Sequence record: NC_021529.2
DNA: 64,000 nucleotides
Reading direction: 5' to 3' (one strand)
In this document: positions 7,221 to 62,920 of the stretch, one piece after another
Layout: each line of letters begins with the position of its first letter
Numbering within the stretch: the first letter of the stretch is position 1
Position numbers and translations under genes: made by a program
Notes under the pieces: model-generated
Seen by the model: the letters and a program-made list of their open reading frames with translations, nothing else
What the model was told of the DNA's origin: nothing
Database searches by the model: none

Positions 7221-7447
7221 TTACAGCAAAAGAAGCACGAGCACGCAGGAAGTCCCTTCCTGCTGCTGTTCAAAGCGCACTAGATGACTTGAATTTAGCG
7301 ATTCAAGTCGCTTCTTCTAGTAAGAATAGTGTAATGTACAAAACTGACAAACTGACATCGAATGAACGAGACTTGTTGAGAAATAAACTCATTAGTCTTG
7401 GTTATGATGCATTTATCGTCGGTGAGAAACTAGAGGTTGTGTGGTGA
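7217..7447 (+). CDS. Hypothetical protein, member of local paralogue family
   Basis: MITAKEARAR...LISLGYDAFIVGEKLEVVW similar to 8335-8595. Confidence 0.7.
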   Translation: MITAKEARARRKSLPAAVQSALDDLNLAIQVASSSKNSVMYKTDKLTSNERDLLRNKLISLGYDAFIVGEKLEVVW

Positions 7448-7662
7448 TGAGCAATTTTGTAAGAACAACAGAAGACATGTGTCGCGACTTTCGCGCTGAG
7501 TTAAATCAAGCTGCGTGTTCAAGTTCTGACTACTATCTCGTTCAGTTATATGCTGCATTTTTAACATTTGGATTTGCATGTCAAATCGCGATATTCATTG
7601 CATTTTATGTTGCTTTTTGCATACCAACAACTGCATTGGCTCGCTTGTTTGGGATTAAATAA
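7441..7662 (+). CDS. Hypothetical membrane protein
   Basis: Hydrophobic C-terminal half. Confidence 0.55.
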   Translation: MVMSNFVRTTEDMCRDFRAELNQAACSSSDYYLVQLYAAFLTFGFACQIAIFIAFYVAFCIPTTALARLFGIK

Positions 7663-13117: not shown

Positions 13118-13125
13118 TATAAATA
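13118..13125 (+). promoter_or_regulatory. T4-type late promoter
   Basis: Exact TATAAATA, ATG 24 bp downstream. Confidence 0.8.
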
Positions 13126-14067: not shown

Positions 14068-15726
14068 TCATGGTGTTAGAGGACTACGCTCTTTAACCAA
14101 TCGTTCTTCGTCAACCGTTGGTTCGGCTGCACGCATGAAGTCAGCGACTTCAGTTAGTTCATGAATTCGTTCTTGTCGTTTACGTTCAGAAAGAACACTG
14201 AATTTTTCATGCTTGTTCTTTTTCTTCAGTCTGATGACTGCATCGAATTCAGAAAGTTGAATCAGCTCAGCTTCAAACAATGTATTGCGATTGATGATGA
14301 ATTCGCAATCACCTTTCTTCCCATGCTTACCTGTTGCAAGAATCGGCAACCCTTCAGCTTCGATTACAAACACAACGTTCAATTTCTTATCAGTTTCAAG
14401 CATATCTAGCATTGTTGATTTGCTATTTTTATCGATTGCATTCACGATAGTTTTCGATGATGATTCAACGAAGTTACATGCAACAATAGGGTTTGTTGAT
14501 GATGAGATAAACGCAGTAGACGCAAATACCCCAGATTCAAGAATCGCACCAACTCGCTTGCTGCTCATTTCAGCACCACGGTACAATGTCATTGCACTAG
14601 CAGATTTACCCGCCTCAGCAAACGCATAATCGAGACGCTTAATGATGTCTGATGCTTTATCAGATTCAATGCCGTGTACCAATGCTTCATTCACTTTCCA
14701 CGCATATCGCGACGCAGAATAGCGAGAAATTGCAGCTTGCGTAAGCGACCCAAGCCCAGCGAATGAATCTTCTTGCATCAATAGCATAGAAAGACGCTCA
14801 TATTGCGCTTCAAGAGCACGAGAACGCGATTCAAGTAAGCAGTTGAATACATCACTAGGGTTTTTAGATTCGTGCATGTACGAGTTGATAGAGTTAGCAA
14901 GAACTGGTAGCTCAAGATTCATGTCAATCAATCCTTGTGCAGCCATTGCAATTTTCGACTCAGATTCAGTTAATGCAATTTCAGTTAAACGCGCATTGTG
15001 TGATGTGCTGTGATGCGATTCAAGTTGCGGCATTTGAAGAACTGCGTTCGGAACACGAGCAGCAGGATTGTCGCCAACCCACGTATCAAGAACAACGTCG
15101 TCGTAATCATCATATTCAGCACCAGCAGTAACGATGATTGTTTTCTTGCTTGAAATGTCAGTTTCTTGCGACATTTTAGCAGCAATCATGTTTACCGTTT
15201 CTTCAGACGCTTCGAATAGCTTGTCAGCGTTGTATCCTGGTTTTGTGATGACGAAGTAGCTGAAATCATCAACCATTTCAGATGTACCATCGTTAACGAT
15301 TTTAGTCGTCTCGCAGCCATAGCGTAGCTTTTTGAATAGCGTTTTTACGCGCATGTCAAACATTTTACCACTGCCAAGCTTTTGAATTCGCATCGATACG
15401 ACGTTTGCACGACGACTAAGCATGAAGTCGTAAACAAGCGTTACGATAGTTTCAATTAGTTTTTGCTGATCGCCCATTTCACGAATAGTCAACCCGCCTT
15501 TCTTTCCGCGCATAGCAGAAACAGTGCAGAACCAGCTACGTTTGCCACGATTGCCGATGTCTGATTTGGTTTTAGTAGTGAACGAAACAACGATGTCCCT
15601 AGCTTCGCCTTTCATATCGATCACAAAGAATTTGTTTTCTTTGGTCGAGCGAGCCGGATAGTAGTCGTATGTCGCGCTCATGTTTTCTGTTAATTGTTGA
15701 TATCCAATCATTTTGTATAGACTCAC
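14068..15726 (-). CDS. alt: Alt-like NAD:protein ADP-ribosyltransferase
   Basis: TLYRG, FISSS and DCEFIINRN match the R-S-E ART motifs; next to gene 30 as in T4; start could be 15711. Confidence 0.85.
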   Translation of the reverse strand: MSLYKMIGYQQLTENMSATYDYYPARSTKENKFFVIDMKGEARDIVVSFTTKTKSDIGNRGKRSWFCTVSAMRGKKGGLTIREMGDQQKLIETIVTLVYDFMLSRRANVVSMRIQKLGSGKMFDMRVKTLFKKLRYGCETTKIVNDGTSEMVDDFSYFVITKPGYNADKLFEASEETVNMIAAKMSQETDISSKKTIIVTAGAEYDDYDDVVLDTWVGDNPAARVPNAVLQMPQLESHHSTSHNARLTEIALTESESKIAMAAQGLIDMNLELPVLANSINSYMHESKNPSDVFNCLLESRSRALEAQYERLSMLLMQEDSFAGLGSLTQAAISRYSASRYAWKVNEALVHGIESDKASDIIKRLDYAFAEAGKSASAMTLYRGAEMSSKRVGAILESGVFASTAFISSSTNPIVACNFVESSSKTIVNAIDKNSKSTMLDMLETDKKLNVVFVIEAEGLPILATGKHGKKGDCEFIINRNTLFEAELIQLSEFDAVIRLKKKNKHEKFSVLSERKRQERIHELTEVADFMRAAEPTVDEERLVKERSPLTP

Positions 15727-17353: not shown

Positions 17354-17427
17354 GCGGAAAATTCCGCATCATCTTAGTAGTATTAGTAGTTTTAGTGATA
17401 TTAGAGATATTAGTAAAATTAGTTTAA
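17354..17427. repeat. Hairpin plus six phased 9-bp TTAG repeats, copy 1
   Basis: GCGGAA-AA-TTCCGC; TTAG at 17374, 17383, 17392, 17401, 17410, 17419. Confidence 0.9.
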
Positions 17428-17469
17428 CAAACGCCTTGACAATCGTATAATATACGTCGAGGTGATGAA

Positions 17470-17709
17470 ATGATAACGATATACACAATTCCTAACTGCG
17501 ACGGCTGTCGCCACGCTATTTCCCTCTGTAAGTTCAAAAACGTCCCGTACACTGTAATCGAGTTGCAGTCTCAATCAGACATCGATAAATTGCATACACG
17601 CCTTGGCGGTGTTCGCAATATACGAGTGCCATTAGCAATGCATGGTGATGACTACATTGGTCATTTACCAGAATTGAAGAAATGGATCGATGCTAATCTG
17701 TATAAATAA
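17470..17709 (+). CDS. nrdC: Glutaredoxin
   Basis: YTIPNCDGC active site, VP motif, YIG. Confidence 0.85.
   Translation: MITIYTIPNCDGCRHAISLCKFKNVPYTVIELQSQSDIDKLHTRLGGVRNIRVPLAMHGDDYIGHLPELKKWIDANLYK
17701..17708 (+). promoter_or_regulatory. T4-type late promoter for gp24
   Basis: Exact TATAAATA. Confidence 0.8.
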
Positions 17710-17766: not shown

Positions 17767-18660
17767 ATGACTGTATCTACTAGTAACGGTTTACCAGACA
17801 TTGTGACTGTTCAAAAACGTCTTTATCCGTTAATCTTTACGGAGATCGTTTCTGAGCAGGTAACAAAGCAACCAGTAGCAACCGCTTACGGATTCAAAGC
17901 TGTATCTGAAGCTGACGACGGTAGTGGTTGGACTCAATTCGGATTCAGACTTGATCGTTGGTATACTGAAGTTAAATCTTCAAAAATGAAGACTGAAATC
18001 TCACTTGAAACAATTCAAGATCTGCAAGCTCTTGGTGTTAATACTACCATCATTGCTGGGTCATTAGCTGACCAAATTGCAGATGAGATCAATACTGACA
18101 TCATCAATGCACTGAACGGAATTTCAACAGTTGGGACAGCTCTTGTACTTGCTGGTACAACAGACTTTGACAAAGGTCAAGATCTGTATGCTAAAGTTCA
18201 CGTGTCTGCTGCTGAAATTGAAAAATCAACTGGATGTCAAGGCACTTATGTAGTTGCTGGCGGGAAATGCTTCGGTCTACTTACAGGCTGTGGTGTTGTT
18301 AAGAAAATCAGCGATACTGTTTACCAAGCATGGTCTGGATTGTACATCGTACACGATAAATATGCAACATCTGATTATGTGACAGTTGGCGTTAAGAAAG
18401 AACTTGGTGATTATGAGATCTCAAGTATCGTATTCAGCCCATATGTCTTTGATAGCGAAACCGAAGGCGCTATTGCTTATCAATACAAAGGGACTGATCC
18501 GAAATCATTCCACTCTGTGTATGGTGTTATTTCACGATACGCACTGACAGTTGCTCCACTTGAAGAAACTCAAACTGGCGCAGTGGAAATCGATTGGGAC
18601 AACCTTGGCGCATTAGCGAACAGTTCTAAGCTGTCTTACACTCATGCAGTGACAGTATAA
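17767..18660 (+). CDS. 24: Capsid vertex protein (gp23/gp24 family), short form
   Basis: KRLYPLIFTEIVSEQVTKQP, LADQIADEINTDII, SIVFSPY, YGVISRYALTVAP resemble gp23/gp24; late promoter. Confidence 0.75.
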   Translation: MTVSTSNGLPDIVTVQKRLYPLIFTEIVSEQVTKQPVATAYGFKAVSEADDGSGWTQFGFRLDRWYTEVKSSKMKTEISLETIQDLQALGVNTTIIAGSLADQIADEINTDIINALNGISTVGTALVLAGTTDFDKGQDLYAKVHVSAAEIEKSTGCQGTYVVAGGKCFGLLTGCGVVKKISDTVYQAWSGLYIVHDKYATSDYVTVGVKKELGDYEISSIVFSPYVFDSETEGAIAYQYKGTDPKSFHSVYGVISRYALTVAPLEETQTGAVEIDWDNLGALANSSKLSYTHAVTV

Positions 18661-18668
18661 GGTGTGAC

Positions 18669-19184
18669 ATGAAAAATCATTATGTAGATAATAAAGCTCT
18701 ATACGCATCGTTGTGCGAATGGAAAGAAGAAATGAAAACGGCACCTGAAGATGTTCATGTGCCTGTACCGAATTTTGTAGCTGAGAGTATTTTGAAAATC
18801 AGCGAAAATCTATCGAGACGTTACAACTTTAGCGGTTACACAGCAACGTGGAAAGAAGAAATGATTGGTGACGCAATCGAGCACTGTTTGCGTTACATCA
18901 AAAACTTTGACACTGAAAAATACAAAAATCCACACGCTTATATAACTCGAATCTGCTTTAACGCATTTGTTCAGCGTATCAAGAAAGAACGTCAAGACAC
19001 TGCGATTAAATATAAAGTATTCTTATGCGATTCGTCTAACTATTCAATGGACGGTGAAGAAGCTGATTATGAGTTTCTTCAACAGATGCTGGAACGTGTC
19101 AACTCTTACGAAACGAGTAAGAAAGACAAGGCTCAACCAGACGAAAAGAACGAACCACTGAACTTACAAAAATTTTACAATTAA
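18669..19184 (+). CDS. 55: Late transcription sigma factor
   Basis: HYVDNKAL, NFSGYT..WKEEMIGDAIE, NPHAYIT.ICFNAFVQRIKKE. Confidence 0.96.
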   Translation: MKNHYVDNKALYASLCEWKEEMKTAPEDVHVPVPNFVAESILKISENLSRRYNFSGYTATWKEEMIGDAIEHCLRYIKNFDTEKYKNPHAYITRICFNAFVQRIKKERQDTAIKYKVFLCDSSNYSMDGEEADYEFLQQMLERVNSYETSKKDKAQPDEKNEPLNLQKFYN

Positions 19185-19193
19185 GGAATTAAC

Positions 19194-20639
19194 ATGTTAG
19201 GTAACTTTGACTCATTTCTGAGTGAAAATCGCCGTCAAACTCAGGGTGGTAAAATCTACCCTAAGTTTGGTCAAGTTATTGTTGAGCTAGGCACTGCATC
19301 TACTGAGTTCAGCAACGGCAAAGGCGTTGAAACAACTATCGGCATGATGGAAAAGGCAAATGAGCTTAAATCTATCATGGAACAAAAGCTATGCGAAGAT
19401 CCAAACGTTAATCATAATATGTTTGACATGAATCTGAGTGAAAATGTAAGCACCGTCAACTTGCTTATGGAAAACGAATTCCTAGCAATGCCAGCGCATT
19501 CACTACAGCAAGTTAAGTCGATGATCATGTGTACTGAAGCGCGTCTTCCGAGTCTTGTGATCAAAGGTGGTGACTTGAATAAGGTTGTGACTGAAGCAAC
19601 TAAGCTTGGTTACAAGCAAAAAGACATCCACGTTGTTATCCCAATGAGCGAAATGAAAATCGTTCTTGCAGATTCGGATAAGTTGGTCATTGAATCACTT
19701 TCATTTGACGGTCTTACTGCGTCTGAAGTATTAGCAAAAGCAGCAACAATCAATCTTGGTGACGTATACGTTACAGTTGAAAGCGTGTCTAGCGAAGCTC
19801 AACTTTCAGAAATGAAAGAGATCAAGATCAAGACAGCGAATCGAGCAATGACTCTTGGATCTCTTAACCGTCATGTCATGGAGCACTTCGTTGTTAAAGA
19901 AGCGAAAGAAGTTTCATATGCGCGTGAAGTAGCAAAAGACACTGGTCTACCAATGCTAGAAGGGTTCAAGGCATACGATTTCAAACGTAATATCACTATG
20001 ATCGAACATGCTCAGAACGTATTCACTAAAGAGATTGCGCGTGCTCCGATGTCTGCAACTGCATGGCAAAACCTAGTTGACGTTAAAGAAGCGTACTTCG
20101 ATAACGGCTGGAAACTGAAACATAACAACACCAGCATTGTTCTTACAAATGCTCGTGACGCAATGCGTGCTAATCGTGTATGTGAAGAATATCGCGTTGA
20201 GCTATCGGAAGCGGGTTACCCACTTCTTGATATGGTAGCAATGATGGAACGTAAAGGCGTTAAGTACTTCGATTGTCAGTCATTTGCTAAAGCAATGGTT
20301 GAATTTGATGGTTGTGTTACACCAGAGCGTCAAACTGTTACTGCATTCGTTACTGAATCAGCATCAAATCGCGTATTCCATCCTCAGATGATGTCTAGTC
20401 TTCGCCCAGTAACTGAAATGGTTGATAGCGTAGATGAGCTTGTTCGCGCACTTGCTAATGACCAGTTTAGCGAATTCCGTGTTTCTGAGTCGATTGCTGA
20501 GTCAATGCTAGATAAAGAAACTCTTTACAGTATGATGGAAAAAATCATCAGTGAAGGCGTTGACGTTAATATCGATGGTAAACTAGTTGAATTCACTGTG
20601 TCTGACACTAAATACAGCATTAACATTGATATTAAGTAA
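19194..20639 (+). CDS. Hypothetical protein with CTS-like N-terminus, possibly a degenerate P-loop
   Basis: MLGNFDSFLSE/; GKIYPKFGQVIVELGTASTEFSNGKG. Confidence 0.6.
   Translation: MLGNFDSFLSENRRQTQGGKIYPKFGQVIVELGTASTEFSNGKGVETTIGMMEKANELKSIMEQKLCEDPNVNHNMFDMNLSENVSTVNLLMENEFLAMPAHSLQQVKSMIMCTEARLPSLVIKGGDLNKVVTEATKLGYKQKDIHVVIPMSEMKIVLADSDKLVIESLSFDGLTASEVLAKAATINLGDVYVTVESVSSEAQLSEMKEIKIKTANRAMTLGSLNRHVMEHFVVKEAKEVSYAREVAKDTGLPMLEGFKAYDFKRNITMIEHAQNVFTKEIARAPMSATAWQNLVDVKEAYFDNGWKLKHNNTSIVLTNARDAMRANRVCEEYRVELSEAGYPLLDMVAMMERKGVKYFDCQSFAKAMVEFDGCVTPERQTVTAFVTESASNRVFHPQMMSSLRPVTEMVDSVDELVRALANDQFSEFRVSESIAESMLDKETLYSMMEKIISEGVDVNIDGKLVEFTVSDTKYSINIDIK
20607..20614 (+). promoter_or_regulatory. 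Late-promoter variant
   Basis: ACTAAATA, ATG at 20648. Confidence 0.55.
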
Positions 20640-20647
20640 GGTGTGAC

Positions 20648-21295
20648 ATGAAAAAATTCGATACATTTTTGACTGAAGTTCAGAAATACAGCTCAGCAGC
20701 AACGTCTATCAAAGGCAAAGAAGTAGCAGCGTTAGTTAAATTGTTCAAGTCAGGCATGTTTGTGCCTGGCGGAACTGCACTTGACTACGGCGCAGGTAAA
20801 TACGGTCGTAACGCAGAGTTCTTGCGTTCTCAAGGTATTCGTACTTACGCATATGACAAGTTCAACGGTACGTCTGCTGACGGTTGGGATGCAGTTAGTT
20901 TGTCTGTGCCAAATGGCATGACATTCGACACTGGCTTTACTTCATACGTTCTGAACGTTGTTCCAGAGTCAGTTGAAGCTGAAATCGTTCGCGAAGTCGA
21001 GTCGTTAACAACTGGTAAAGTGTTCCACATCACTCGTGGTACTGACATTACACAAACTGTGTTTAATGTGATTTCTGGTAAATCTAAAAATGACGTGATG
21101 ATGCAGTTCGTTGCTCAAGAATATCCAGAGATTTATGGTCAGATTGTCGCTAACGGCGGTACTAAAGAATTAGCTAAAGAAATTGCAACTCGTGGTGTTG
21201 TAACAGCTAAAGACAGCTTTCAACGTATTCCAGACTTATCAAAGTACGGTTACAGAAAGTCTGGTTCAGGCGCATCTGTCGTGTGGACAAAATAA
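20648..21295 (+). CDS. Class I SAM-dependent methyltransferase with capsid-targeting-like N-terminus
   Basis: ALDYGAGKYG (motif I), YAYDKF, FTSYVLNVV; MKKFDTFLTE/ N-terminus. Confidence 0.8.
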   Translation: MKKFDTFLTEVQKYSSAATSIKGKEVAALVKLFKSGMFVPGGTALDYGAGKYGRNAEFLRSQGIRTYAYDKFNGTSADGWDAVSLSVPNGMTFDTGFTSYVLNVVPESVEAEIVREVESLTTGKVFHITRGTDITQTVFNVISGKSKNDVMMQFVAQEYPEIYGQIVANGGTKELAKEIATRGVVTAKDSFQRIPDLSKYGYRKSGSGASVVWTK

Positions 21296-21309: not shown

Positions 21310-21392
21310 AAGAAAAGGGTTGCTTCGGCAGCCCTTTTTTTGTATTATAGCTTTATCGAAACGACATCGACTAACAAAGAGAGAACATTATG
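21310..21392 (+). promoter_or_regulatory. Terminator/early promoter/RBS cassette, copy 2
   Basis: GGGTTGC-TTCG-GCAGCCC-T7; TTGCTT-N17-TATTAT; same leader as copy 1. Confidence 0.85.
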
Positions 21393-22526: not shown

Positions 22527-22990
22527 TGGACATTAAATCAGGCGCTGGCTATCCAGCTAGTGCGCTGTCAAACTTCGCGCCGCACGCATTTACTGTGCGT
22601 GGTGTTGAGTGTGCGTCAATGGAAGGGTTTCTTCAGGGACTGAAGTTCAAAAACCCAGATATGCAACGTGAAGTCTGCAAACTTGTAGGCAAAGTTGCTA
22701 AAGCACGCGGTGCAAAGAAGAACTGGCAACGTACTCAGACACTGTATTGGCAAGGTGAGCCTATTCAACGCGCATCAATTGGCTATCAGACATTACTTGA
22801 TGATGCCTACGCAGCGTTAGCTCAGAACGTCAAATTTCAAAAGGCATTGCTTGCTACTGGTAAAGCTACCCTTACTCATTCAATCGGGCGTAAGAAGCAG
22901 GCAGAGACGGTTTTAACTGTACAAGAATTCTGTAGCCGATTGACAGAGATTCGGGATTATCTACAAAAAGATGCTGATGAACGTAGTTAA
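22526..22990 (+). CDS. NADAR-family protein (T4 gp30.3-like)
   Basis: YPASALSNFAPHAF, SMEGFLQGLK, LYWQG, LLATG..LTHSIG. Confidence 0.85.
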   Translation: MDIKSGAGYPASALSNFAPHAFTVRGVECASMEGFLQGLKFKNPDMQREVCKLVGKVAKARGAKKNWQRTQTLYWQGEPIQRASIGYQTLLDDAYAALAQNVKFQKALLATGKATLTHSIGRKKQAETVLTVQEFCSRLTEIRDYLQKDADERS

Positions 22991-23477
22991 ATTGATGATT
23001 CGTGCGATCAATCGTGCGAAGAACACAGATAAGCCTATCGTCTATATCGACATGGACAACGTACTTGTTGACTTTCAGAGCGGTATTGATGCACTTTCTA
23101 TTTGGGAAAAGAATCAATATCAAGGTCGTTATGACGAATGTCCGGGTATTTTCACTCACATGAAGCCATTGAAAGGTGCAATTGCTGCATTTGAAGTGTT
23201 GATCAGGCACTATGATTGCTATATACTGTCAACTGCACCGTGGGATAACCCAGGGTCATGGCAAGACAAGCGATTATGGGTTGAGCGTTACTTAGGTAAG
23301 GGTGCTTATAAACGTCTGATCTTGTCGCACAACAAACAGCTAAACTTCGGTCATTATCTCATTGATGATCGCACTAAGAATGGTGCGGGTGAGTTTATGG
23401 GCGAACACATTCACTTTGGTACCGACGAATTCCCTGACTGGCATTCTGTCGTGACCTATCTCACGAGTAAGAAATAA
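22971..23477 (+). CDS. 5'(3')-deoxyribonucleotidase (HAD)
   Basis: YIDMDNVLVDF, ILSTAPW, LILSHNK, YLIDDR. Confidence 0.92.
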   Translation: MLMNVVKLMIRAINRAKNTDKPIVYIDMDNVLVDFQSGIDALSIWEKNQYQGRYDECPGIFTHMKPLKGAIAAFEVLIRHYDCYILSTAPWDNPGSWQDKRLWVERYLGKGAYKRLILSHNKQLNFGHYLIDDRTKNGAGEFMGEHIHFGTDEFPDWHSVVTYLTSKK

Positions 23478-24517
23478 TGAAACTTGCACTATTAGGGGAC
23501 TTACATATCGGCATTAAAGATGACGATCTGTGGGTTCAAGATTATCAGCGCAAATTCTTTGACTTCATGTTTTCTGAACTTGAAAAGCGCGGTATAACTG
23601 AGATCATTCAACTAGGTGACTGGTTTGATGTTCGTCGCGGTGCTACTCAAGAAACGTTGATGTTTCAGCGAACTTATCTAAACGGTATGCTAAACGGGTA
23701 TAATACTCATGTACTTGTCGGTAACCACGACATGCACTTGCGTGAATGCATTGTTCCGAACACGCCGTATGAAGTTCTGAGCATTGTTCCTGATGTTGAA
23801 ATCTACGAAAAGCCAAGAACTGTCAAGTTTGGTGATGTTGCGATTGATATCATCCCGTGGATTTGTAAAGAAAATGCAGTCGAAATCGACGAATTTATCA
23901 AACGAAGCGATTCAGAATACTGTGTTGGTCACTTTGAACTAAATGGGTTTGAATTCCACAAGGGTCAAAAAGCAACTGGTTGTTTAGATGCTGGGTTCTT
24001 GAAGAAGTACAAACAAGTTTGGTCTGGTCACTTCCACACTCAATCTGAAGCAGGCAATATCAAGTATCTTGGTACTCCATATACATTGACACTTGCTGAT
24101 GCCGATGATAAACGCGGTTTTTGGATTTTCGACACTGACACTCATGATCTTGAGTTTGTTGAAAACCCAGATTGTTGGCACACTAAGCTGTACTTTGATG
24201 CTGAAACATTCGATCCAAAGCGAATCCCATCGTATGAAAATCGCAATGTGAAGATCATCGTTGAGCGTCGTTCAAGTGACAAACGTGAAATCTCGTTTGA
24301 TGTCGTCGAAGAGCGCATTGCACAAATTGCACATGCTTGTCAGACTCTAGACGAATTAGACATCAAAACTGACGTTGCAGACGATATCAAGTCGATTAAA
24401 GACATCGGTGATTACGTTGAAGAATACACAAACACGCTTGATGAATCTACTGCGGTGAAAGAGCAAGTAAACGCTATTTTCTCTGCACTGCGTGCTGAAG
24501 CTATGGAGAATGCGTGA
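23477..24517 (+). CDS. 47: Recombination nuclease subunit (Mre11/SbcD-like)
   Basis: GDLHIG, LGDWFD, VGNHD, GHFE, SGHFH. Confidence 0.96.
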   Translation: MKLALLGDLHIGIKDDDLWVQDYQRKFFDFMFSELEKRGITEIIQLGDWFDVRRGATQETLMFQRTYLNGMLNGYNTHVLVGNHDMHLRECIVPNTPYEVLSIVPDVEIYEKPRTVKFGDVAIDIIPWICKENAVEIDEFIKRSDSEYCVGHFELNGFEFHKGQKATGCLDAGFLKKYKQVWSGHFHTQSEAGNIKYLGTPYTLTLADADDKRGFWIFDTDTHDLEFVENPDCWHTKLYFDAETFDPKRIPSYENRNVKIIVERRSSDKREISFDVVEERIAQIAHACQTLDELDIKTDVADDIKSIKDIGDYVEEYTNTLDESTAVKEQVNAIFSALRAEAMENA

Positions 24518-40081: not shown

Positions 40082-41746
40082 ATGAAACTGTTTACTGAAT
40101 TTTATCAAGAAGTGCGTCTTGACGAAATCTCAGACCGCGCCAATATCGATATTGATTGGGATTGGGGTCATGAGAACGGCACTGGCGAAACTTCAGCACG
40201 TTTTAACGCTGCTGGCGAGGATTTCAGCGTAAGCGTTGACGAAAATAATCCTGGTTATTTCACTATTTCGTTCCAAAACTCAGGTGGTTATTCACAGACT
40301 GGTCGCGCTGGTCACTCTGCGGCTGCTGTATTCTCTGGTGTATTGACTACACTACGTGAATTCACTGAGACGTATGAAGAAGAAATGGATAAAAAGCCAT
40401 ACGAATACGATTTCAGTGCTGCGTATGAGCTACCGAGAAATCATGAGTACTACGCTCTACAAAATAATCGCAGAGAAGCACAACGCTTAGACGAAGAAAG
40501 CAAGAAAAAGCTATTGAAAGATCTAATCTCTCGCCCGATGCTTTACTACGCACTATCATTGACGTTTGGTAAAGAATACGGTTACTCGACTGACATTAGT
40601 GATCGCTGGCTTGAGCGTCTAGCAGGTGGTGCTAACGATTTCCGCTCTGTTCGTAAGAACGTAACTCGTGCTATTCTTTCAATGAGTGACAACGATGTCA
40701 ATCAAGCACTTATGCAAATGAGTGGTTCAGTTGGCTTCACGCTTACAAACCAACATCAAAATTCATACGATTACGATGCTCCGTTCGGTCAAGCAAGTCT
40801 AGAAGACACGATTGACGATGCTGATCAATATCAAATCGAAGCATGGATTAATGACGGTCGCGAAGATGAAATTCTAGAACACGCAGATTGGCGAACACTA
40901 GTTCGTATCGCTGAATGGGGTCTGATGCACGATGAACTAATTTACCATGATGATGCGGACGTTCGAGCCGCAGTAATGCGCACGGATTATGAAATGGGTG
41001 ACAAGCTTGCACAATCAAGTGACCCTGATCATCGACAAGAAGCTGCTGAAAATGGGTTTTCTATCTGGGAACTTGTTCTTGACTCAGACGACGACGTTCG
41101 CGAAGCTGCGTGGGATTGGTCTTTTGAGAATGACGACGCAGATACACGAATCGACTATGCAAAACGTATCAAGAGCGAAATGGGTCGATCTATTGCAGAA
41201 GACTTCTGGGACAGAATGATTGATGATGTAGACGACTACGAAGACCGCGTTTACGTTGCTGAACAAGGCTATCGCCTTGAAGAACTAGTTGATGATCATG
41301 ACGAAGATGTTCGACAAGCAGCAATGAACTACTACTTCAACAATTACGGTTCTGAAGACGCTGTTGGATCAATTCTCGAATACGGTGATGCTTATCGTGA
41401 AGAGAACTTCGCATACATCATGGGTGGTAACTTCGGCCCATCTGCTGAAGAAAAAGCAATCGAACTTGCGAAAGAAAATGATGTAGATGTGAGCGAATAT
41501 GTTCGTACTTCAGACATCACATGGTACAAGTGGAATGATCCTGTTGCTGATATGAAAGTTGTCGATGAAGAAGGCACTGAATTTGATATTCAAATTACCG
41601 CGCAGGATGATGGTAACTTTACCATTGTCATTGACGGTGATGAAACTTCTGACATTCCATTCAGTGACATCTATAGTATTTTCAAGACTGAGTACGGCAT
41701 TAATATAGATGATTACACTTATGTGTACGATGATTTAAATAATTAA
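40082..41746 (+). CDS. Very acidic putative internal protein with HEAT-like repeats
   Basis: MKLFTEFYQEVRLDE/; L..D.D.DVR.AA repeats; TCTAAATA at 40047. Confidence 0.7.
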   Translation: MKLFTEFYQEVRLDEISDRANIDIDWDWGHENGTGETSARFNAAGEDFSVSVDENNPGYFTISFQNSGGYSQTGRAGHSAAAVFSGVLTTLREFTETYEEEMDKKPYEYDFSAAYELPRNHEYYALQNNRREAQRLDEESKKKLLKDLISRPMLYYALSLTFGKEYGYSTDISDRWLERLAGGANDFRSVRKNVTRAILSMSDNDVNQALMQMSGSVGFTLTNQHQNSYDYDAPFGQASLEDTIDDADQYQIEAWINDGREDEILEHADWRTLVRIAEWGLMHDELIYHDDADVRAAVMRTDYEMGDKLAQSSDPDHRQEAAENGFSIWELVLDSDDDVREAAWDWSFENDDADTRIDYAKRIKSEMGRSIAEDFWDRMIDDVDDYEDRVYVAEQGYRLEELVDDHDEDVRQAAMNYYFNNYGSEDAVGSILEYGDAYREENFAYIMGGNFGPSAEEKAIELAKENDVDVSEYVRTSDITWYKWNDPVADMKVVDEEGTEFDIQITAQDDGNFTIVIDGDETSDIPFSDIYSIFKTEYGINIDDYTYVYDDLNN

Positions 41747-61339: not shown

Positions 61340-61648
61340 ATGAAAACTTTCAATGAATTTTTAGCTGAAGCTCAACACATGTATGAGCTACCACCTGGGT
61401 ATGAAGTATTCGGTCTAGTAGATGTAGATGGGAAAGAGGTTGAACTCCATTCAGACGATGTGATGCGTGACGAATTAACAAGAGTTGCAAACGCACGTAA
61501 CGTAGCTATTGCAACTGGTGGTGTTTCTTCAGAAGAAGCAGGTGTATTAATCACCAAAGGCGGTAAAGAAGTTGATTACTTCCCGCATGAAGATAAAGCA
61601 AGTGGTCCACGCTTTAAAAACTTCGTGAAACGTCACTTCAAGGTCTAA
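61340..61648 (+). CDS. Putative internal head protein
   Basis: MKTFNEFLAE/ closely matches the T4 IP capsid-targeting sequence MKTYQEFIAE. Confidence 0.7.
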   Translation: MKTFNEFLAEAQHMYELPPGYEVFGLVDVDGKEVELHSDDVMRDELTRVANARNVAIATGGVSSEEAGVLITKGGKEVDYFPHEDKASGPRFKNFVKRHFKV

Positions 61649-62347: not shown

Positions 62348-62920
62348 ATGAGTAGTACTAAAGGTAACGTCAACAAAGACGATTACTATGCTACACCATC
62401 TTGGATTGTTGAAGAGTTTCTACGCGAGTTTGAAGCTCGTATTCAACTCGATATGAGCATGGCAGAAATGTACGTGCTCGATCCATCGTGTGGTGGCTGT
62501 TCAGAACATGAAGCAGCGTATCCAGTAGCATACAAGAAAATGTATGGTGTTGACATCGACACGATGGATATTCGTGAAGATAGTCACGCTAATCTAATAG
62601 CGAATTATCTAGAAACAGATATCCCGGTCAAGTATTATGACATGATAATGACGAATCCGCCATTCAGCTTGTCTGTTGACTTTGCTGAGAAAGCACTTGC
62701 TGAGGTGAAATATGGTGGTTATGTTGTGATGTTGCAGCGTCTGAATTGGCTTGGTAGCATTAAGCGCAAACCGTTCTGGGACAAGATGCCATTAAAAGCT
62801 GTGCTTGTGCATCATCGCCGTCCGTCGTTTCACGGTACAAAAGGTACAGACTCGATTGAGTATGCTCATTTTGTGTTTCAGAAAGGGTACAATCAGTCTG
62901 CTAAATTGGTGGTGATATGA
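62348..62920 (+). CDS. DNA amino-methyltransferase (N6-A/N4-C type)
   Basis: DYYATP, VLDPSCGG, TNPPF. Confidence 0.9.
   Translation: MSSTKGNVNKDDYYATPSWIVEEFLREFEARIQLDMSMAEMYVLDPSCGGCSEHEAAYPVAYKKMYGVDIDTMDIREDSHANLIANYLETDIPVKYYDMIMTNPPFSLSVDFAEKALAEVKYGGYVVMLQRLNWLGSIKRKPFWDKMPLKAVLVHHRRPSFHGTKGTDSIEYAHFVFQKGYNQSAKLVVI

Follow-up and report, generated by a model that had tools for sequence, protein, structure and literature searches.

Does a KVP40-like phage carry a methyltransferase in its head and inject it together with its DNA? The question is raised by ORF332 of Vibrio phage nt-1, an open reading frame (ORF) on the plus strand at positions 20648-21295 of the stretch analysed here. 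This stretch, hereafter the window, comprises the last 64 kilobases (kb; 64,000 nucleotides) of record NC_021529.2, and a position in the window equals the record position minus 183,511. Phage nt-1 has a genome of 247,511 bases and is a KVP40-like relative of T4 (Straboviridae) isolated on the laboratory workhorse Vibrio natriegens. ORF332 encodes 215 amino acids (aa), is listed in RefSeq as a hypothetical protein (VPFG_00113), and has a 92% identical orthologue in KVP40 (KVP40.0066). An earlier note on this DNA had proposed a methyltransferase dependent on S-adenosylmethionine (SAM) that begins with an internal-protein leader and may travel in the virion. The reading frame, the leader MKKFDTFLTE, the motifs LDYGAG and SYVLNVV, and the upstream ACTAAATA to which it pointed are each present where it had placed them. 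Our answer, which we give with moderate confidence on the basis of sequence, structural modelling and analogy, is that ORF332 would be a pro-enzyme loaded into the head by its leader, cut by gp21 and injected, and that it would methylate a target other than a DNA amino group.

Proteins injected by T4-like phages act before any phage gene is read, and so they decide the first seconds of infection. Few of these proteins are understood; IPI acts against a restriction enzyme, and Alt acts on RNA polymerase.

The first line of evidence is the N-terminus itself. In the T4 record (NC_000866), ipII and ipIII begin with MKTYQEFIAE followed by A, and ipI begins with MKTFKEFTST...ITE followed by A. ORF332 begins with MKKFDTFLTE followed by V; it shares M1, K2, F7 and E10 with the ipII/ipIII leader, and the residues at positions 4 (F/Y) and 8 (L/I) are conservative replacements. 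The leader ends in L8-T9-E10, which corresponds to the gp21 motif Leu/Ile-x-Glu and can be compared with ITE-6 and LTE-619 of Alt, ITE-6 of nt-1 gp68, and LLE-9 of gp22. In T4, the internal proteins and Alt carry propeptides of 10-20 residues that bring them to the scaffolding core and that gp21 later cleaves off (PMC5694885; PMC3012670), and Alt is cut at ITE-6 and LTE-619 (PMC5694885). The predicted capsid-targeting propeptide of ORF332 is encoded by codons 1-10 (20648-20677, plus strand), and a Shine-Dalgarno sequence, AAGGTG, can be read at 20638-20643 on the same strand, 4 nucleotides (nt) 5' of the ATG. Cleavage by gp21 after L8-T9-E10 is predicted to leave a mature methyltransferase of residues 11-215 (20678-21295, plus strand, stop codon included), with a mass of 22.2 kDa and an isoelectric point (pI) of 9.1. 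Since ORF332 starts with a T4 head-loading tag, it is probably injected with the DNA.

We controlled for chance with the N-termini of 385 nt-1 ORFs (77,142 residues, whole public record). The strict pattern ^M.{2,4}[FY]..F[LI].E occurs three times among these N-termini, against an expectation of 0.044 (Poisson p = 1.4e-5). Its core, [FY]xxF[LI]xE, is found six times in the 77,142 residues, three of them at residue 4-5 of annotated proteins. When the N-termini were ranked by BLOSUM62 similarity to the T4 ipIII leader, ORF332 took rank 5 of 385 with a score of 19 (median -4, 95th percentile 8). In the orthologues of KVP40-like phages, leader positions 4 (F/L), 7 (F/Y), 8 (L) and 10 (E) are kept, and positions 3, 5, 6 and 9 vary freely. 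The resemblance of the ORF332 leader to the T4 capsid-targeting sequence is real and non-random, and the internal-protein leader proposed earlier is in this respect upheld by sequence. Such a leader needs the gp21 protease, the scaffold protein gp22 and gp68. Phage nt-1 has genes for all three, which lie together with those for gp20, a gp67-like protein and gp23 at record positions 141051-146402. A similar motif also appears at the N-termini of the head-core proteins of nt-1: gp68 begins with MKFITE, gp22 with MQIKEQLLE, and gp23 has ..ELLE, each followed by A.

The leader recurs among the relatives of ORF332. We counted 190 relatives, namely those in which the landmarks TSI...DYGAG could be located. 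In 87 of them, TSI is preceded by 20-30 residues, and a hydrophobic-x-E motif within residue 14 is present in 65 of the 87. Taking every relative with at least 20 residues before TSI, the motif was present in 91 of 130 (70%), compared with 79 of the 385 nt-1 control ORFs (20.5%; Fisher p = 4e-24). The -2 position is Leu, Ile or Phe in 86 of the 91 leader-bearing relatives.

Two further observations suggest that the leader is separate from the enzyme. In the AlphaFold2 model of ORF332, the mean predicted local distance difference test score (pLDDT) is 48 for residues 1-10, 57 for residues 11-20, and about 95 for the domain; from the low value of residues 1-10, the leader is predicted not to be packed on the domain. 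Additionally, in fusion relatives the leader stands at the extreme N-terminus and the extra domain lies between the leader and the methyltransferase. P0124 and P0081 carry the leaders MKSTEFITE and MKSIDFIPE ahead of an unassigned domain, P0127 has MRIIEILTE ahead of an extra domain, and P0136 has MKITNLFE ahead of a GNAT domain (Pfam match). Since the leader in such fusions is 100-200 residues away from the methyltransferase domain, it would not be part of the enzyme. Taken from the sequences and the model, the leader is a detachable module. Other methyltransferase fusions are P0256, with ART-PolyVal, P0130, with DUF5661, and P0158, a protein of 1110 residues whose 900-residue tail contains DUF5710. 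Another relative, P0121, resembles the GNAT fusion P0136 by eye only. As judged from sequence, P0136, P0121, P0256, P0130 and P0158 have polyvalent-protein-like architectures, and BFVD holds phage proteins of 1130-1292 residues with a similar domain.

The second line of evidence concerns the enzyme. ORF332 is very probably a SAM-dependent methyltransferase; this is indicated by the profiles that its homologues match, by the fold of the model and by the SAM-binding residues, which are invariant. The Pfam family Methyltransf_23 (PF13489) was matched by 41 of 49 aligned homologues (best E = 1.3e-7), and TehB or Methyltransf_11 was matched by a few of them. Some relatives pass the Pfam gathering score, such as P0124 with 32.5 bits versus 27 for Methyltransf_23. 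Because ORF332 lies below the thresholds and its homologues match PF13489, its membership in a methyltransferase profile is by transitivity only. A phmmer search of ORF332 against PDB sequences returned no meaningful relative, and the profile of the 49 homologues matched in PDB sequences only the motif I region of TehB and of flavivirus NS5 methyltransferases (E >= 0.4). In PHROGs, ORF332 falls into the uncharacterised phrog_14016. GenBank already labels the homologue of Vibrio phage 1.081.O as a SAM-dependent methyltransferase.

The family is large and viral. We found 233 relatives of ORF332 in a collection clustered at 90%, and 433 representative clusters at 50% identity. In a tblastn search of 50,697 phage records, the family was present only in 49 KVP40-like Vibrio phages; uncultured phages are the source of the many relatives that share about 40% identity. 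T4-like genes (homologues of gp20, gp21, gp23, gp43, gp41, uvsW or gp18) lie within 10 kb in several of these metagenomic loci. No cellular relative was detected when one genome each of 185,579 bacterial and archaeal species was scanned with three peptide patterns. The ORF332 family is distinct and uncharacterised, and it has so far been seen on no DNA other than that of phages or viral metagenomes.

The AlphaFold2 model, built on the alignment of 49 homologues, reached a pLDDT of 90.2 and a predicted template modelling score of 0.86. Foldseek comparison of this model with the PDB gave 190 matches at E <= 1e-3, and the best 50 of the 190 are almost all named as SAM-dependent methyltransferases or as complexes of that fold with SAM or S-adenosylhomocysteine. 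The top value among the matches listed, a TMq of 0.59, was obtained for both METTL6 (8owx) and toxoflavin N-methyltransferase (5ufm), and the sequence identity of ORF332 to the listed matches is 8-17%. The Foldseek check that the earlier note had suggested therefore places the predicted structure, among its best 50 matches, in the class I SAM methyltransferase fold. ORF332 is modelled as one compact domain of about 205 residues, interrupted only by a helical insert at residues 132-182.

The conserved residues fall where this fold would place them. Motif I, LDYGAG (residues 45-50; 20780-20797, plus strand), forms the predicted SAM-binding glycine loop after strand beta1 (residues 43-47). D70 (20855-20857, plus strand) is the acidic residue ending beta2 (residues 65-69), a SAM-ribose-contacting position in this fold. 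The motif SYVLNVV (residues 99-105; 20942-20962, plus strand) follows beta4 (F93-S99), and its residues L102, N103, V104 and V105 are invariant in the 49 homologues. The family also has an invariant set of its own, comprising T19-S20-I21, R54, N103, H127, R130, Q192 and R193. Through homologue profiles, the AlphaFold2 fold and these residues, all of them prediction or profile evidence, the claim of a SAM methyltransferase was supported, though indirectly.

These residues also bear on whether ORF332 could be a methyltransferase fold that has lost catalysis and is used only as an internal protein for structure or DNA packing. The T4 internal proteins are mostly non-enzymatic and ORF332 itself is below Pfam thresholds, as this proposal would have it. 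However, D46, G48 and G50 after beta1 and D70 after beta2 are invariant across the 49 sequences, whose identity to ORF332 goes down to 34%, and the polar residues N103, H127, R130, Q192 and R193 are invariant as well. This pattern is the signature of an active enzyme, and we consider a dead fold very improbable.

The substrate class was approached through the motif that follows beta4. The earlier note had taken VLN-V for a catalytic loop of nucleic-acid amino-methyltransferases and had mentioned a family associated with DNA phosphorothioation. Motif IV, (D/N/S)PP(Y/F/W), follows beta4 in none of the 49 sequences, and ORF332 has Y-V-L-N-V-V-P there, with S99/Y100 directly after the strand; VLNVV was therefore rejected as an amino-methyltransferase loop. 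By position, in an alignment read by eye, FDxxxxSxVLNVVPE appears to correspond to 'fDlvvs..vlhhvpd' of Methyltransf_11/23, so that VLNVV matches a generic VLHHV-type motif of these families. The link to phosphorothioation did not hold either. TIGR04096, a putative methyltransferase linked to DNA phosphorothioation, has no match for ORF332 itself; the homologues score 19.6-27.3 bits versus a cut-off of 150, and of the 478 profile positions only 14-89, the part that binds SAM, are matched.

An enzyme that methylates DNA and so protects the phage genome from restriction, whether packaged or not, in the manner proposed for P1 DarB or injected Dam-like enzymes, is improbable, although we rank it above a dead fold. 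Methyltransferase domains for DNA that are carried in capsids are known from P1 DarB and polyvalent proteins (PMC5512222), the mature ORF332 protein is mildly basic at pI 9.1, and the weak TIGR04096 matches of the homologues could be read in the same direction. Those matches, however, are limited in score and extent as described, and ORF332 has neither motif IV nor a PC motif after beta4. As a single domain of about 205 residues, it has no target-recognition domain; no DNA methyltransferase Pfam family was matched by any of the 49 homologues, and no DNA methyltransferase was so described among the 50 best PDB fold matches listed. Phage nt-1 also has a separate gene with this annotation, ORF405 (62348-62920, plus strand; 190 aa), a 'DNA methyltransferase' in RefSeq whose annotation was not confirmed by Pfam (no match at E <= 0.01). 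With no motif IV after beta4 and a trivial similarity to TIGR04096, a DNA amino-methyltransferase is disfavoured. By these sequence comparisons, the target is most likely not an exocyclic amino group of DNA, and a protein of the host, an RNA or a small molecule would be more likely.

For a packaged protein, the timing of expression matters, and we examined the operon. The genes for gp24 (head vertex protein; 17767-18660; RefSeq VPFG_00110), gp55 (late sigma factor; 18669-19184), ORF331 (19194-20639) and ORF332 are consecutive on the plus strand with gaps of 8-9 nt, gp24 and gp55 being the first and second genes of a predicted late operon. The order gp24, gp55, a protein of about 480 aa and the methyltransferase is kept in Vibrio phage 1.081.O (51% identity) and in the metagenomic contig L038. 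A T4-type late promoter, TATAAATA, lies at 17701-17708 (plus strand), 67 nt before gp24 when counted from the octamer start to the ATG. In the window, exact TATAAATA is found at 13118, 17701 and 31456 (minus strand) only; in the nt-1 genome there are 16 sites, 10 of them on the plus strand. Six of these 10 lie 18-46 nt (gp24: 67 nt) before gp25, wac, gp18, gp22, gp23 and gp24. Since TATAAATA precedes these genes and also ORF010 (see below), it behaves as a T4-type late promoter. With at most one mismatch, TATAAATA is rarer in the window than expected (40 versus 69.8; 100 of 100 shuffles gave at least 40), which suggests selection against stray late-promoter-like sequences.

An intrinsic terminator with a 14-bp stem, a UUCG loop and a U-run closes the operon at 21310-21341 (plus strand). 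Its folding energy is -19.7 kcal/mol (z = -5.15), and none of 200 shuffles folds as well. The stem pairs an A-run with a U-run (AAAGAAAAGGGUUGC/GCAGCCCUUUUUUU) and could therefore terminate in both directions. No convincing terminator was found before 21310; two sites within gp24 look like terminators, but their stems are short and their T-runs poor. The octamer ACTAAATA (20607-20614, plus strand), which the earlier note had proposed as a late promoter upstream of ORF332, is not credible in that role: it has two mismatches to the consensus TATAAATA, lies inside ORF331 codons (..D-T-K-Y..), and is not above chance. The likely promoter is instead the TATAAATA before gp24.

From these elements, we infer late expression, packaging, cleavage, ejection, catalytic activity and the substrate class of ORF332 as follows. 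ORF332 would be transcribed late, as the last gene of the gp24-gp55-ORF331-ORF332 operon, from the TATAAATA at 17701 to the terminator at 21310-21341; early expression from a sigma-70-like site at 17424 would also be possible. As the prohead assembles, the leader would attach the protein to its scaffolding core; gp21 would then cut after Leu8-Thr9-Glu10, and a mildly basic enzyme of 205 residues would stay with the DNA in the head. On infection, the mature enzyme would enter the cell with the DNA and methylate its target by means of host SAM before phage gene expression.

The alternative that has to be weighed most carefully is that ORF332 is an ordinary cytoplasmic phage methyltransferase that is never packaged and acts on a small molecule, RNA or protein in the infected cell, the N-terminal helix being part of the enzyme or a coincidental resemblance. 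We regard it as possible but rather unlikely. The observations that follow weigh against packaging, and several of them favour the cytoplasmic enzyme. Thirty-four of the 190 relatives have no leader (at most 14 residues before TSI). In keeping with a detachable leader, however, these proteins start at about ORF332 residues 10-12, which is the predicted cleavage site; the starts MDKQKYSSAETSI... (L032, L035) and MSQKHSSAKTSI... (P0009) align with V11-QKYSSAATSI of nt-1. A leaderless syntenic orthologue, 65% identical to ORF332, was found at 10001-10615 of L038, a KVP40-like contig (ENA ERZ23495409 scaffold_4, 164 kb). Its start codon and the stop codon of the neighbour overlap in TAATG, with stops in the same frame further upstream. 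The neighbour of 478 residues keeps MLENFDSFLSE although the methyltransferase is leaderless. The leader is therefore dispensable in at least one relative, and L038, as read from its sequence, amounts to a natural leader deletion; together with the 34 leaderless relatives, it shows that the enzyme works without a leader.

The remaining points of this kind concern the signal, the expression and the family. Taken by itself, an amphipathic helix at the N-terminus that is short and ends in Glu is a weak signal, and the loose leader pattern fits 20% of the control ORFs. No late promoter adjoins ORF332: the exact match at 17701, which is 2.9 kb away, is the only one upstream within its operon, and no TATAAATA with at most one mismatch occurs on the plus strand between 18486 and 21295. 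Late expression of ORF332 would therefore depend on read-through over 2.9 kb, through gene 55, which belongs to the same operon and is not a virion gene. The sigma-70-like site upstream of gp24 (17424-17451) might also drive early expression. The closest structures belong to generic methyltransferases that act on small molecules, proteins or RNA, by which no substrate is indicated, and ORF332 itself has no Pfam match at E <= 0.1 and no NCBIfam match. No neighbour family was shared across lineages among 26 metagenomic and IMG/VR loci. Virion proteome, transcriptome or biochemical data for KVP40-like phages were not found in the searchable literature.

Against the cytoplasmic enzyme stands the leader in all its occurrences. 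At least six nt-1 proteins that are unrelated to one another bear the same leader, as do neighbours of the homologues in other phages; that of ORF332 matches the T4 targeting sequence and ends in a gp21 motif. It is modelled at low confidence and detached from the fold, and in the fusions it is far removed from the methyltransferase domain. We therefore retain the injected pro-enzyme as the preferred explanation.

The metagenomic neighbourhoods show a related trend. The gene next to a leader-bearing methyltransferase is often leader-bearing too: in L007, MKLRDLLVE adjoins MILRTLIQE, and in L017-L019, MKLEKFLNE is near MKFKNYLTIE. Loci with a leaderless methyltransferase have few or no neighbouring leaders. 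In L003 (7333-13813; ENA ERZ3422215 NODE_31, 258 kb), the homologue adjoins a protein with a faint T7-kinase-like Pfam match, and a NUDIX protein is nearby. Several neighbours in this locus have leaders of the M-R/K-x-x-x-L-I-x-E type, such as MRDLINLINE and MRKLRDLIALIE, and from its sequence L003 may be a cluster of tagged host-takeover enzymes. As hints to the function of the methyltransferase, the T7-kinase-like neighbour of L003 and the Rnl1, Thg1 and Ro-like RNA-repair genes of L007 were rejected, being confined to single loci and not reproducible.

Similar leaders were found on about seven other nt-1 proteins, so that the leader rule yields about eight candidates in this phage. The first of the 385 in rank is ORF403 (61340-61648, plus strand; 102 aa), whose MKTFNEFLAE followed by A scores 39 and is the closest nt-1 match to the IPII/IPIII leader. 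It has no Pfam, PHROG or NCBIfam match and is, by sequence, a good candidate for a T4-style small internal protein. Two other small hypothetical proteins score 31: ORF196 (record 99562-99852, minus strand), with MKTFDEFVTE, and ORF010 (record 7243-7596, plus strand; locus L009), with MKTFNQFVSE. ORF010 lies among early-region genes, yet it has its own exact TATAAATA 32 nt upstream. ORF364 (40082-41746, plus strand) is a hypothetical protein of 554 aa that begins with MKLFTEFYQE (score 20, rank 4 of 385), and its only Pfam match is a weak one to HEAT repeats. ORF157, outside the window (record 72583-73689, plus strand; 22583-23689 of locus L012; 368 aa), begins with MKNLKSFMEE (score 15). It contains a PARP-type ADP-ribosyltransferase domain with a Pfam E-value of 3e-5, just under the gathering score. 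By analogy with the packaged Alt of T4, ORF157 may be a second packaged ADP-ribosyltransferase besides Alt. The alt homologue of nt-1 itself, an ADP-ribosyltransferase by annotation, is located at 14068-15711 (minus strand) and its protein starts with MIGYQQLTE; the T4 counterpart is packaged and processed by gp21.

ORF331, the conserved neighbour directly upstream of ORF332, encodes 481 aa and begins with MLGNFDSFLSE (score 13). Its family comprises 12 clusters, and those with a name or a long contig are KVP40-like Vibrio phages. M1, F5 and L9 of the leader are invariant in this family, and ORF331 is acidic (pI 5.2). No Pfam match was obtained, the AlphaFold2 model was poor (pLDDT 66.5), and the best Foldseek match had E = 0.33. 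As a functional partner of ORF332, ORF331 was a dead end: no usable fold match was obtained, and the domains at the N-termini of the fusion proteins are not similar to it.

If ORF332 is packaged, a function would be given to a large phage and viral family that is common in uncultured marine T4-like phages, and methyl transfer would be a new chemistry in the injected arsenal. The leader would also allow candidates for injection to be listed in such genomes by a simple sequence-based rule. We tentatively extend the proposal, while holding it doubtful in this wider form, to a T4-type leader that marks a whole set of injected enzymes in KVP40-like and many uncultured marine T4-like phages, with ORF332 as the first injected phage effector methylating a non-DNA target. 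This set would contain the ORF332 methyltransferase, the PARP-like ADP-ribosyltransferase, and the GNAT- and ART-methyltransferase fusions, and possibly the kinase-like and NUDIX proteins. Were this wider proposal true, a host protein, RNA, or signalling or defence metabolite would be modified within seconds of infection, before phage gene expression. The statement of the earlier note that such a protein had not been characterised in T4-like phages fits the literature that we found, in which the 2003 KVP40 genome paper was not covered.

Finally, we compared ORF332 with known systems. At the level of the enzyme, its family has the same fold as Methyltransf_23 (PF13489) and TehB-like proteins, and also shares with them the motif I region DxGxGxxGRN, an acidic residue following beta2, and a VLxxV-type motif following beta4. 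It differs in that ORF332 scores below the threshold and in its own invariant signature, which consists of TSI ahead of the fold, HITR behind beta5, and FQRIP close to the C-terminus. The homologues are weakly similar to TIGR04096 over the SAM-binding N-terminal part, whereas ORF332 has no dnd context and there is no full-length match of at least 150 bits.

A virion-borne methyltransferase, as proposed for ORF332, is the feature shared with P1 DarB and the polyvalent methyltransferases (Iyer et al. 2017). Domains of the DarB type resemble the adenine methyltransferases EcoKI/TaqI, carry NPP(Y/F) and are fused to a superfamily 2 (SF2) helicase (PMC5512222). ORF332, in contrast, is a single-domain, Methyltransf_23-like protein with no NPP(Y/F) and no helicase. 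Some of its relatives are closer to polyvalent proteins, being multi-domain with effector-type domains (GNAT in P0136, ART-PolyVal in P0256, and P0158).

T4 Alt embodies the same concept as proposed for ORF332, that of an enzyme loaded into the head via a short propeptide and acting at injection (PMC5694885; PMC5512222). Alt transfers ADP-ribose from nicotinamide adenine dinucleotide, whereas ORF332 is predicted to transfer a methyl group from SAM; within the window, nt-1 likewise encodes an alt homologue, and outside it the leader-bearing, PARP-like ORF157. With IPI, IPII and IPIII of T4, ORF332 shares a leader of about 10 residues, M-K-x-aromatic-x-x-F-(L/I)-x-E, that ends in a gp21 motif. 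As in T4, one leader stands on several unrelated proteins of nt-1, which likewise has the gp21, gp22 and gp68 machinery. The T4 internal proteins are small, basic and DNA-associated or anti-restriction proteins, whereas the cargo of ORF332 would be an enzyme fold of 205 residues with no similarity to them beyond the leader; packaging is known for T4 and predicted from sequence for nt-1. ORF332 is thus a probable new cargo of a known delivery system, drawn from an uncharacterised enzyme family.

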